A stretch of 64,000 nt of DNA. Origin: Saccharolobus solfataricus P2. GTDB taxonomy: Archaea; Thermoproteota; Thermoprotei_A; Sulfolobales; Sulfolobaceae. The notes beneath the pieces were generated by a model. That model was not told the origin of the DNA. It was given only the letters and a program-made list of their open reading frames with translations, and did no database searches. A program made the position numbers and the translations under genes. Position 1 is the stretch's first letter. Each line of letters starts with the position of its first letter. The stretch lies in NCBI RefSeq assembly GCF_000007005.1, contig NC_002754.1; one strand, 5' to 3'. Below are positions 42,891-52,255 of this stretch, piece after piece.

Positions 42891-42978
42891 CGGACCCGGC
42901 GGGATTCGAACCCGCGACCACCGGCTTTCTTCCGAAAGTTAGGAGGCCGGCGCTCCATCCTGGCTGAGCTACGGGTCC
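42891..42978 (-). tRNA. tRNA-Arg(CCT) with 13-nt intron at 37/38 (intron 42927-42939); CCA not encoded
   Basis: GGACCCGTAGCTCAGCCAGGATGGAGCGCCGGCCT-CCT-A-[ACTTTCGGAAGAA]-AGCCGGTGGTCGCGGGTTCGAATCCCGCCGGGTCCG. Confidence 0.97.
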
Positions 42979-48597: not shown

Positions 48598-49110
48598 TTA
48601 CTCTTTCACCCCATTCCATTCATTCTCATATTTTGCTAATAAATCATCGTATTTACCTTCTTCCACTTCCTTTACTAGTTCTTTAGGGTCTCTATTATCC
48701 ACTGTTAGTCCGATAGACTTAGCTGTACCTAGCATACTTTTTAATGCAGCCTTTAACGATTTAGTAGTTAACCCCGGTTTTTTCATAATTGCTATTTTAA
48801 TTACTTGTTCTAACGATAAATTACCTATCTTTTTATGTGCGGGATCTCCAGATGGTTCACTAGCACCGGCTTCCTTTAATAATAATGCAGTAGTAGTAGG
48901 TATTCCGACTTTTATCTCATATTTTTTAGTACTACTATCGACTTCTATAGTAACTGGAACTGACATGCCTTTAAAACTACTAGTAGCCTCATTTAATTTC
49001 TTGACAACTTCTCCTACATTTAACCCTAACTGCGAAAGTGTTGGCGCTAATGGTGGTCCTGGCTTAACATTACCTCCTTCTACCATTATTTTTATTGTTT
49101 TTATGGGCAC
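48598..49110 (-). CDS. rpl11: 50S ribosomal protein L11
   Basis: [25 protein letters not shown]; GTG 49110 with GAGGTGA SD (track 49119). Confidence 0.98.
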
Positions 49111-49115
49111 CTTAT

Positions 49116-49574
49116 TCACCTCTTTGAGACCTTAATTTGATCTAGAGGAACTGTGACTTGTAATGGAAATGCTGATTCTAAAATATTTAACACTACCTCT
49201 CCTTTAGCTTCCTCAACCCTTATCACTTGAGCTTGAGTACCCCTAAAGGGACCAGAAATTACTTCTACTACATCACCAGGTTTTACAGTAGGACCTACAG
49301 TTTTTCTAGATACAATCTTTAATATTTCATCTCTAGGTAGTAAACCTTGTGCAAGACCTCTTGCATTCCTTATCCCAGCAATTAATGGTTTAACTATATG
49401 TAAACCCTCTGCCTCTAGAACTACATATCCTTTTAAATTGGGTGGAACAATTATTGCGTATATTCCTTTAATATTATTAGTTTTTATTCTTTCTTCCAGC
49501 ATTAAAGCTACATTTATTTCTTGCCCTCCAACCACCTTTATAGCATAATAGTTTCTCATATTCGGTTTTTCCAC
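49116..49574 (-). CDS. spt5: Transcription elongation factor Spt5 (NGN+KOW)
   Basis: [33 protein letters not shown]; GTG 49574 with GGGGTG SD. Confidence 0.96.
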
Positions 49575-49578
49575 AAAA

Positions 49579-49767
49579 TTACACCCCAATTAATGTCAAC
49601 GCAAGTTGAATTATGTAAGCTAATACACCTACTACGGCTAATACTAGTAAAGTAACTTTAAGGTTAAGTGAGAAAAAGTTTCTATCCGGTTTCCTCGCTA
49701 CTGTAATTATTCTATTCCAATCCTCTCTAAGCCTTCTGAACCAGTTAATTATCTTATTTGAACTCAC
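49579..49767 (-). CDS. secE: Protein translocase SecE / Sec61-gamma
   Basis: RIITVARKPD amphipathic helix + single TM; canonical position. Confidence 0.92.
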   Translation of the reverse strand: MSSNKIINWFRRLREDWNRIITVARKPDRNFFSLNLKVTLLVLAVVGVLAYIIQLALTLIGV

Positions 49768-49798
49768 AGTAATTTATAATTGGTTTAAGGTATTTAAG

Positions 49799-50870
49799 TT
49801 AACTGAATAATCTCTGAATGAACCATTCGGCATTAAATGGAATTAGATCATCATAAGCCTGACCTATTCCTAAATATCCAACAGGCTTATTTAATTCATA
49901 AGCTAACGATAATATTACACCGCCTTTTACATCTGCATCGACTTTAGTTAATATTACTAGATCGAATCCAACATTATTTTCGAAGTATTTAGCTTGCTCT
50001 AATGCATCGTTTCCACCTAGGGAGTCTAAAACTAATATTTTTAGATTTGGCTTTGCAATATTAACAACTCTCTTTAGCTCATTCACTAAATCAGTGTCAG
50101 TATGCATTCTTCCAGCAGTATCTATTAAGACTACATCTATACCCCTACTTTTAGCTGCACGTATTGCATCAAAAGCAACTGAGGCAGGGTCACCTCCATA
50201 TCTACCTTTAATTAAAGGTATCTCTAAGTTTCTTGAATGAACTTCCAACTGTTCTTGCGCTGCTGCTCTAAACGTATCTGAAGCTGAAATAATACACGAT
50301 AAGCCATTTTTTTTAAGCATATATGCAAATTTCGCAATAGTTGTAGTTTTACCTACTCCGTTTATTCCGAAAAATATTATTATATAAGGTTTTGGTGATT
50401 TTTTTATTTCTTCTAATACATTTATGGCATTATTCTTTGTTATTATCTCAGTGATAGATTTTTTCAGAGAATCCTTTACTATTCTTTCAAGATCATCGCT
50501 TCGTTTTACCTTTTTGCCGATTATGTTTTCTTTCAGATCTTCAAGAATTTTCTCAGTAACTTCAAAAGAAACGTCACTTTCCAGTAGCTGATATCTCAAT
50601 TCCTCTATGAAGTCTTCTATATCTTTCTCCTTAATTTCTCTATATCTAAAAACATCAAAAATACTTCCACCACTCTTCCTCTCTTCTTTAGTTTCTTCCT
50701 TTACTTCACTAGTTACTGATTGATCCGTTATGTTATTACTAGTCTGCTGTTGATTACTAATAGTTGTCTCTGTAGAAGGGATATTTTGTTCGATCTTTTG
50801 TGTCTCTTCTTGCTCTCCCTTTAATTTATCTACAAAATTAGAAAAAGCTTTCCTTATTTTATCAAAACAA
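49799..50870 (-). CDS. ftsY: SRP receptor FtsY with non-canonical initiation
   Basis: GINGVGKTTT, DTFRAAA, DTAGR, TKVDAD. Frame open to 50875 (..CFDKIRKAFSNFVDKL..) with no in-frame ATG/GTG/TTG upstream of 50599. Confidence 0.95.
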
Positions 50871-50871
50871 T

Positions 50872-51315
50872 TTATTCACCTTGTTGTCTCCTGGCAGCTG
50901 CTTGCTGTATTTGATTTAGTATGTCAACTATCTGATTATATGTACTAGCAGCTTTTTGAAGTTCATTATTTAGATCTTGGGCTGCCTTACTTATCTCATC
51001 CTTTCTCTTATCAAGAATCTTTATAGCTGAGTCTAGGTCCACTTCTGCATAATAAGATAAACCTAAATGAACAGTTACCTTATCTCCTATTATACCCCCT
51101 ACTTTTGCTAAAAGATATCCTTTTCTATCAATGAAGACTAACATTTCTTTATTTCCACTCTTCATCGTCTCTATCGCTTGTTTTGCAGAGTCTATTGAGT
51201 TTATCGACTCTAGCAATTCTAGTTGAGTTCTCTGCAATGAATCTATGTACCTTTTTAGGTAATCTGCTTGTGCTATTAATTCGTCTAATGTTATACCTCC
51301 TTGTCCTTGACTCAT
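50872..51315 (-). CDS. pfdA: Prefoldin alpha subunit
   Basis: Coiled coil - beta hairpins ([12 protein letters not shown]) - coiled coil. Confidence 0.93.
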
Positions 51316-51321
51316 CTTTCA

Positions 51322-51582
51322 TCACATTATAATTTTATCAACTTTAGCTAATTCTCTTATTCTTCTATCTGGAATTTCTTCTTCCTTTATTTCACTTATT
51401 TGCTCTATTTTTATGTTATATCGCTTTATCTTATTCTTGCTGCCAAAATGTGAATAAACGTACTCAATAGCTTGTTTTTCATTCAATGCTCTAACTATCT
51501 TTACAAATTTTCTCTTTTCTGGATAGTGGGATTCGCCAAATAGTGCAGTTCCTTTGACAAGGTAAAATTTTATTCCACTCAT
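51322..51582 (-). CDS. rplX: 50S ribosomal protein LX (eL20/L18a)
   Basis: [32 protein letters not shown]. Confidence 0.95.
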
Positions 51583-51583
51583 C

Positions 51584-52255
51584 TCATTCACCTAATGCTT
51601 TTTGAATTCTTAAAATCTCTGGACCCGTAGTTGACGCGCCTACTAACGTTCCTTTATCGTTTGCGACTAGCCCACTTTTGATAAATACACTTCCAAAATT
51701 TACCGTGCCAATATCTATCTTAACTCCGAACAATTTTTCCAATTCTTTTAATTCTTTCTCACTTGTATCAACATGTACTAGTCCACCCTTATTTGTTATA
51801 ACTCCTACAGAACCTACGGTTATCATTTGAGCTATTTTCCCTCTTTTTATATCTTCAACACCTAAGGTCTCCTTTATTATCTTCTCTTCAATATCATTAA
51901 ATTCAGGGTAGATTAACGCGGCCTTATTATTTGCCAGTATTGTATTTCCTAGTGCAGTAACTTTTGAATTAAGAATCTCAACTCTGCAATCCCTTAGATT
52001 CTCCTTCAGAAATCTGAATTCATCATCAATTGTAGACTTAGGTAAAAGAATTCCGTTATCGTTACCGCTTATGAAAATACCTAAAAGAAAACTTCTGGAT
52101 ATTTCTGCTTCTAATAACTCCGTTCCTAATACTTGGGCAATATTTTCTTTTGTTTCGCTATCTAATCCTCTAGGTATGATTGTATATTTATTATTAGTAT
52201 AAATATAGACTCCTATATTATCTGTTCCAAAAACTGATAACCTTTGCAGATTCAT
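51584..52255 (-). CDS. eif6: Translation initiation factor 6 (aIF6)
   Basis: [39 protein letters not shown]. Confidence 0.97.

Follow-up and report, generated by a model that had tools for sequence, protein, structure and literature searches.

Programmed +1 ribosomal frameshifting is known from several well-described systems. One group is formed by UUU_Y sites (Y, pyrimidine), which have been reported for E. coli (UUU_Ynn), for the UCC_UUU_CGU cassette of influenza A segment 3 and for yopN-tyeA of Yersinia (PMC5009743). The sequence UUU_Ynn has been described as especially prone to +1 shifting, and +1 shifting is established for UCC_UUU_CGU and for the RF2 sequences, in which UGA comes after CUU_U or UUU_U (PMC5009743). 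For Archaea, a 2021 review names fucA1 of S. solfataricus as the only programmed frameshift reported, and this is a -1 event (PMC8211752). Here we analyze ftsY, the gene of the signal recognition particle (SRP) receptor, in a stretch of 64,000 nucleotides (nt) from Saccharolobus solfataricus P2 (contig NC_002754.1, hereafter the window), together with the pfdA-ftsY junction of related Sulfolobaceae. Comparison of these junctions makes it highly probable that some form of +1 recoding acts at ftsY. We consider it likely that expression of the gene in Sulfolobaceae depends on a programmed +1 frameshift of the ribosome at codon 2, brought about by slippage of the P-site tRNA.

Read directly from the window, the minus strand at 50880..50861 is GGTGA ATAAA TTG TTT TGA T. 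The final codons of the upstream gene pfdA are GGT GAA TAA; they contain the Shine-Dalgarno (SD) sequence of ftsY and the pfdA stop (TAA, 50874-50872), and the TTG follows at a distance of 1 nt. The downstream gene was identified as ftsY by Pfam PF02881 and PF00448 and by a match to PDB entry 5l3w (E = 1e-131). Its frame is open from an ATA at 50875 to the stop at 49801-49799, and ATG, GTG and TTG are all absent from the 92 codons between 50875 and 50600, the first canonical start codon being the TTG at 50599. Initiation at the ATA would yield 358 amino acids (aa), while a +1 shift after TTG-TTT yields a protein of 356 aa that starts with MFDKIRKAFS. A first-pass annotation, made from the sequence of the window, had given the bases of the junction, the open frame, the 92 codons without a start and the two product lengths, and all of these details are exact. 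Its core reading, in which an SD sequence leads an out-of-frame TTG and tRNA-Phe slips by +1 at codon 2 to give an MFDK product, is supported by the comparison with relatives. This comparison comprises 24 Sulfolobaceae genomes among the matches listed, and in addition 6 metagenome contigs. It covers Saccharolobus, Sulfolobus acidocaldarius, Sulfurisphaera, Stygiolobus, Acidianus, Metallosphaera, Sulfuracidifex, Ca. Aramenus, Acd1, HS-7 and others; Acidianus sulfidivorans, Sulfolobus tengchongensis and Metallosphaera tengchongensis stand outside the junction set.

The following course of events is proposed. The SD sequence GGTGA in the last pfdA codons would set the initiator tRNA on UUG (50870-50868), one base out of the FtsY frame, and UUU (50867-50865) would be decoded by Phe-tRNA. 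After the first translocation the A site would hold a slow codon, UGA in the window and the rare arginine codon CGA in most relatives. During the resulting pause, Met-Phe-tRNA-Phe (anticodon GAA) would slip by one base from UUU onto the overlapping UUU or UUC (here 50866-50864), so that GAU, coding for Asp (Glu in some relatives), would enter the A site and be read as the third codon of the 356-aa product. Ribosomes that fail to shift would release a dipeptide in the window and peptides of 3-18 residues in CGA-type species. The second codon is particularly shift-prone in bacteria, and in tRNA-Phe a modification of the wyosine family at position 37 keeps slippage in check. The codon available to tRNA-Phe in the +1 frame is UUC, its full Watson-Crick match, in 17 of the 24 junctions and UUU in the other 7. 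CGA, which we call slow from its codon frequency and not from tRNA abundance, occurs 1.76 times per 1000 codons in the open reading frames (ORFs) of the window and 1.01 times in the CGA-type loci, AGA and AGG together reaching 33-37. The codon that enters the A site in the +1 frame is GAT, GAC, GAA or GAG, and GAT and GAA are used 37.6 and 44.1 times per 1000 codons in the window. Judged by comparison with other lineages, the shifted product MFD(K/R) would have the N-terminus of FtsY in other archaea, which is the ancestral form. The likely role of the site would be to hold FtsY at a low and fixed output compared with the prefoldin and ribosomal-protein genes that lie upstream.

By analogy with the described systems, the ftsY site is to be placed with slow-codon +1 shifting at UUU_Y and not with the prfB type. 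As in UUU_Y sites, the P-site tRNA-Phe would re-pair perfectly on UUY, the next codon is a rare CGN arginine codon or a stop, and no RNA structure is needed. The ftsY shift would differ in being obligatory for the only useful product, in occurring at codon 2 after an out-of-frame start, and in being archaeal and family-wide, whereas the known UUU_Y examples are low-level and internal and yield an additional product. The label prfB-type, given to the site by the first-pass annotation, captures some shared traits. Like bacterial prfB (CUU_UGA; UUU_UGA in a minority of species), the ftsY junction has a short ORF, a slippery NUU_U followed by UGA and an SD sequence nearby, the +1 shift would be obligatory for the main product, and it would compete with termination in the seven UGA-type species, including that of the window. 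However, the A-site codon of ftsY is UGA in only 7 of the 24 junctions and CGA in 17, the SD sequence lies at initiation distance, 6-7 nt before the start codon and not 3 nt before the shift codon, and the short ORF has 2 codons compared to about 25 in prfB. An autoregulatory loop is likewise missing, FtsY not being a factor that reads the A site. The site thus fails three of the four features that define prfB (conserved UGA, SD sequence at 3 nt, feedback loop) and shares the slippery codon, and the label has to be given up. The idea that SRP-receptor output is tuned by release-factor competition does not hold in general, a sense codon standing in the A site of the 17 CGA-type junctions. A further parallel is provided by yeast Ty1 and ABP140 (CUU_AGG_C), where the P-site tRNA also slips during a pause at a rare arginine codon and no downstream structure is involved (PMC5009743). 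These sites differ in tRNA and codon, are eukaryotic, and lie deep inside an ORF, where they fuse two long ORFs. With fucA1 the ftsY site shares the organism and the use of ribosomal frameshifting, but fucA1 shifts by -1 on A-AAA-AAT between two long ORFs, in a non-essential gene of one strain. Four traits would set ftsY apart from every known example, namely the position at codon 2 right behind an out-of-frame start, the necessity of the shift for a gene generally held to be essential, the occurrence in archaea and the family-wide conservation.

The junction is strongly conserved. In all 24 genomes we find GGTG followed by A, G or C, a gap of 6-7 nt between GGTG and the start position, and then a start triplet that begins with T (15 junctions), C (8) or A (1) and continues with T (23) or C (1) and G, followed by TTT, a C (17) or T (7), and GA. 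Accordingly, the triplet at the start position is TTG in 15 junctions, CTG in 8 and ACG in 1, while the bases G-TTT and GA are invariant. Junctions with TGA are those of S. solfataricus, S. islandicus, a Saccharolobus metagenome-assembled genome (MAG), S. acidocaldarius, Sulfurisphaera tokodaii, A. manzaensis and one further MAG. The run of four T, whose conservation had been expected in the first-pass annotation, is not kept, most junctions reading TTTC. Within S. solfataricus the junction is identical base for base in strains 98/2 and P1, and it is nearly identical in S. islandicus. A metagenome scan with a pattern that fixed only the downstream peptide F[DE][KR]xKKAF[ST] recovered the same out-of-frame arrangement in 6 of 6 Sulfolobaceae-like FtsY contigs, while all 32 FtsY genes from other archaea and bacteria with this peptide begin at an ATG or TTG that stands directly in frame. 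In the nearest outgroups the sequence is TTG GTT TTC GAN, again in frame, and the Sulfolobaceae form TTG TTT CGA N is 2 nt shorter. In the window the composite GGTG-N6-YTGTTTYGA occurs once, and it was absent from 100 shuffles; the 9-mer YTGTTTYGA alone is unremarkable, with 2.6 occurrences expected. That the site is not a chance occurrence follows from its conservation at exactly the pfdA-ftsY junction in the 24 genomes and the 6 contigs. The distance between the pfdA stop and YTG is not constant and amounts to 1, 2 or 5 nt depending on the genus. A fixed gap between the SD sequence and YTG combined with a variable distance to the pfdA stop indicates that the SD sequence, and not termination of pfdA, is the point of reference.

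The single ACG junction comes from the Sulfolobaceae MAG CF.Pisc.bin.25, which reads ACG TTT TGA (locus L012:1480-1510). It is also the sole junction without the nominal Cys codon, the FtsY frame being taa CGT TTT GAT. In the shifted frame the sequence is ATA ACG TTT TGA, and the short ORF would have to start at ACG, which lies at the usual SD distance, or at ATA. The variant may be an error of the MAG or genuine.

Which frame is read, and from where, can be judged from the pattern of substitutions. Downstream of the site the mean column entropy in the FtsY frame is 1.12 bits at third, 0.49 bits at first and 0.34 bits at second codon positions. This three-base periodicity from the Phe codon on indicates that FDKLKKAFSxF is translated in the FtsY frame, and initiation further downstream is thereby excluded. 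The periodicity is broken exactly at the nominal Cys codon TGT, whose third base has an entropy of 0 bits, while all 12 other third positions of this frame at offsets 6-39 vary, with 0.41-1.68 bits each. The residue that would precede the Cys is variable (N, I, S, F, L, V or R), but its codon ends in a pyrimidine in all junctions except one of the 24. An invariant third base next to a variable preceding residue points to selection on the nucleotides YTG-TTT in the other frame and not on a dipeptide ending in Cys. The first-pass annotation had suggested an alignment of the junction and had predicted orthologs with odd N-termini of the type xxCFD. Such entries exist throughout the family as MNCFD, MICFD and MSCFD, and the TTG-TTT-YGA string is indeed conserved, yet as nucleotides, since the encoded residue ahead of Cys is not. 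In each of the 24 junctions the FtsY frame is closed by a stop 0-4 codons ahead of TGT, and 12 junctions offer neither a canonical nor a near-cognate codon in the interval between the two. In many species a canonical start is missing from the first 90-160 codons of the open frame. SD-led ORFs elsewhere in the window have gaps with a mode of 6-8 nt; the TTG lies 6 nt after GGTG and the ATA 1 nt.

The conserved N-terminal peptide itself is amphipathic. Its helical hydrophobic moment (muH) is 0.66 compared to 0.285 for shuffled versions, 0.5% of which reach 0.66, and FDKIRKAFSNFVDKL is likely a membrane-targeting helix. A related peptide was seen in metagenome ORFs of about 125-130 aa, which start with ATG GTN TTY GAN AAR ATH AAR AAR GCN TTY (MVFDKIKKAFS...) and continue with ...EYLEIDL... 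(L096, L098, L099, L101, L105, L112, L113 and many others). These look like archaeal SepF-type proteins with an FtsY-like N-terminal amphipathic peptide, and the sharing would fit a membrane-targeting helix that is required at the extreme N-terminus.

Several observations weigh against an obligatory shift at codon 2. CTG and ACG, found at the start position of eight junctions and one junction, respectively, are poor or unproven starts in Sulfolobales. All eight CTG junctions (L002, L006-L009, L086, L088, L092) have the 6-nt gap and contain, within the SD sequence, a GTG in the YTG frame that is open through to CTG, and judged from these sequences the SD-internal GTG might start a 5-codon ORF in place of CTG. 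A 6-nt gap always places the SD-internal GTG in the YTG frame without an intervening stop, as in the window (GTG AAT AAA TTG TTT TGA), and a 7-nt gap occurs only with TTG or ACG. Three Metallosphaera, namely M. javensis (L006), a M. sedula-like MAG (L086) and M. hakonensis (L088), have an in-frame GTG that overlaps the pfdA stop (GTGA), and from this arrangement they may initiate conventionally without any shift. Their junctions (GGTGAGTGAAC/GC TGT TTC, near locus position 1200) retain CTG TTT CGA, and M. yellowstonensis has GTA at the place of the GTG; the lineage may be in transition to a conventional coupled start. Moreover, the SD sequence lies 9-10 nt from the shift codon, compared to the 3 nt that are stimulatory in prfB, and RNAalifold returned no conserved pairs for 22 aligned junctions between -30 and +80. 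Given the SD distance and the missing conserved structure, shift efficiency could be low or modest for a gene that is generally held to be essential. It also has to be considered that the 24 junctions are phylogenetically related and partly derived from MAGs, so that the counts overstate the number of independent events, and that YGA results automatically from coding Phe-Asp/Glu, so that the A-site codon is no independent evidence.

The conserved string could also be used one step earlier. If the initiator tRNA sat on YUG and the first Phe-tRNA were accommodated out of frame on UUY, or if a 4-nt translocation took place, the same YTG-T-TTY sequence would give the same MFD product without a slip of a paired tRNA. 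Pairing of tRNA-Phe (GAA) is better with UUC than with UUU, and the UUC in the +1 frame of the CGA-type junctions is in line with such a route. However, the skipped base would then be free to vary, while it is T in 24 of 24 junctions, as expected if a full UUU is needed, and the slow A-site codon would have no role. We therefore regard recoding at the initiation step as unlikely. Ordinary in-frame initiation at a non-canonical codon would not need any recoding; in the window it would use the ATA at 50875, coupled to pfdA termination, and produce the 358-aa MNCFDK protein. This form is present in NCBI and UniRef, UniProt P27414 has an equivalent start, ATA or ATT is found in frame in 9 of the 24 junctions, and the three Metallosphaera offer their GTG. 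Against this, 12 junctions have no canonical or near-cognate codon in frame after the upstream stop (for example taa TTT TGT and taa CGT), which means that ATA/ATT initiation cannot be the general mechanism. The ATA of the window lies only 1 nt after GGTG instead of the usual 6-8 nt, and what is conserved ahead of Phe is the nucleotide string YTGT, not the encoded residues. The extension with Cys is furthermore absent from FtsY outside Sulfolobaceae, as far as the outgroups and metagenome FtsY that were compared are concerned. The ATA start, already named as an alternative in the first-pass annotation, is weakened as a general mechanism, and we consider it distinctly improbable.

A correction at the level of RNA, by polymerase slippage on the T run or by mRNA editing, would yield transcripts one U short that read TTG TTY GAN. 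Transcriptional slippage is a known route of frame correction (PMC5009743), and a TTTT run is present in the window and in six other junctions. In the remaining 17 the run is only TTT followed by C, and the fixed distance between SD sequence and YTG would be explained no better than by a ribosomal shift. Known transcriptional slippage tracts are considerably longer than TTT. Taken together, this makes RNA-level correction very improbable. Finally, there might be nothing special about the junction, the odd frame being due to a sequencing error, a strain-specific mutation or a downstream start at TTG 50599 or ATA 50731, and gene callers do indeed give versions of 310, 266 and 208 aa. This is scarcely credible, since three S. 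solfataricus assemblies share one and the same junction and the site is kept family-wide, since the periodicity and the conserved FDKLKKAFSxF reflect purifying selection on the FtsY frame from Phe on, and since a portion of the N domain would be missing from the 266-aa form. Within the reach of sequence data, this view is already refuted. The extra T that the first-pass annotation had considered as a sequencing error is excluded by the identical junctions of 98/2 and P1 and by conservation of the site across the family. A fusion of PfdA to FtsY by a frameshift out of pfdA was rejected as well, because the spacing between the pfdA stop and YTG (1, 2 or 5 nt in different genera) leaves no conserved frame relation and because a stop in the FtsY frame stands 0-4 codons upstream of TGT. 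With respect to leaderless initiation, no TATA-like A/T box was seen by eye about 26-33 nt upstream of the TTG, and no further test of this was made. The coordinates of all features are compiled in Table 1.

Table 1. Features of the pfdA-ftsY region in the window (S. solfataricus P2, positions of the 64,000-nt stretch) and the evidence for each.
Feature	Position	Strand	Basis
pfdA (prefoldin alpha), coding sequence	50872..51315	-	ORF list; Pfam PF02996 on the identical gene in two S. solfataricus assemblies
Shine-Dalgarno sequence GGTGA	50876..50880	-	GGTG invariant in 24/24 Sulfolobaceae junctions, 6-7 nt ahead of YTG
TGA stop inside GGTGA, closes the FtsY frame directly upstream	50876..50878	-	Sequence
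TTG, putative initiation codon of the 2-codon ORF, -1 frame relative to FtsY	50868..50870	-	Sequence and junction comparison
Predicted slippery tetranucleotide TTT_T	50864..50867	-	TTT invariant in 24/24; TTT_C in 17/24 relatives
TGA in the initiating frame, putative slow A-site codon at the shift	50862..50864	-	Rare Arg codon CGA instead in 17/24 relatives
FtsY main ORF after the predicted shift; first codon GAT (Asp3), stop TAA 49801-49799	49799..50863	-	Pfam SRP54_N, SRP54
FDKIRKAFSNFVDKL, conserved N-terminal amphipathic peptide, likely membrane-targeting helix	50822..50866	-	Three-base periodicity, muH, FtsY of other lineages
FtsY NG (GTPase) domain, residues ~69-356	49802..50665	-	Alignment to S. 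acidocaldarius FtsY structures 5l3s/5l3w
ATA, rival in-frame non-canonical start of the 358-aa database entry (MNCFDK...)	50873..50875	-	1 nt after GGTG
ATA, start of the 310-aa public annotation; conserved N-terminus lost	50729..50731	-	Database comparison
TTG, first canonical in-frame start (266-aa call), inside the N domain	50597..50599	-	ORF list

In public annotation the gene has no uniform start. FtsY entries of the family span 208-392 aa, with starts at ATA or ATT or with truncations that remove the N-terminal peptide. For S. solfataricus and S. islandicus, 358, 310, 266 and 208 aa are annotated, the 310-aa call being identical in 98/2 and P1, and for S. acidocaldarius 369 (UniProt P27414), 312, 305 and 208 aa; in Acidianus and Sulfurisphaera, too, each genome has two differing calls. 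Across the family, entries that start with MNCFD, MICFD or MSCFD stand beside truncated ones of 208-351 aa. None of the database proteins in a collection of about 15 billion is the predicted MFDK form of 356 aa. No usable N-terminal proteomics of Sulfolobus was found in the literature, and the PDB entries 5l3w and 5l3s of Sulfolobus FtsY are constructs of the NG domain that are uninformative on the native N-terminus. Since the predicted tryptic peptide MFDK has only 4 residues, it would have been too short for an earlier identification. Literature searches on Sulfolobus or Sulfolobales frameshifting, start codons and ribosome profiling found no report of a recoding site in ftsY, with most subscription journals, including the 1990s papers on 'dpa', outside reach. 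A large 2016 recoding review, the 2021 review and the S. acidocaldarius atlas paper do not mention ftsY. The 'dpa' genes of Sulfolobus and Acidianus were presumably described in those 1990s papers, and an old remark on the odd start is possible. Thus, the odd N-terminus has long been visible in databases, and an interpretation as recoding was not found.

The genomic surroundings of ftsY are conserved in Sulfolobaceae, with the gene order eIF6, L18a/LX, pfdA, ftsY, a membrane protein of 59-62 aa, Spt5/NusG, L11 and L1 (about 48598-52255, minus strand, in the window). The small membrane protein is probably SecE/Sec61-gamma, an assignment made by position only. The gene ftsY thus lies within a cluster of translation genes, for which high expression is assumed. 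At other places in the window, ARAGORN called two tRNA-Pyl (cta) genes, at 996-1085 and at 42891-42978, both on the minus strand, and Rfam confirms tRNAs of 88-90 nt at both positions. Judged by eye, their anticodon loops have the sequences CT-TCT-AG and CT-CCT-AA, and an intron of 13-15 nt comes after each loop. The Pyl call is therefore an artefact, the two genes being intron-containing tRNA-Arg(UCU) and tRNA-Arg(CCU).

The distribution of the site allows a tentative view of its history. A 2-nt deletion in an ancestral TTG GTT TTC GAN start, as still present in the nearest outgroups, was probably the origin of the Sulfolobaceae junction. We lean towards the view that an obligatory +1 shift at codon 2 became fixed in the ancestor of Sulfolobaceae and has been kept since, with the deletion as its probable origin and a role as a sensor as a possible addition. 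In such a role the site may couple SRP-receptor synthesis to aRF1 activity, to the supply of tRNA-Arg(UCG) or to the wyosine state of tRNA-Phe. If true, this would be the first +1 programmed frameshift that we find reported for a cellular archaeal gene, and an obligatory frameshift in a core gene that is conserved across a whole family. With an SD sequence, a start codon, UUU_Y and a slow codon, all within the first 9 nt, its minimal layout would make it a compact natural system, and it would provide a model for how the eukaryote-like ribosomes of archaea keep their frame at high temperature, and for the role of tRNA-Phe wyosine. For the organisms themselves, it would suggest how a receptor of low abundance can be produced in a low and constant proportion when its gene shares an operon with prefoldin and ribosomal-protein genes.

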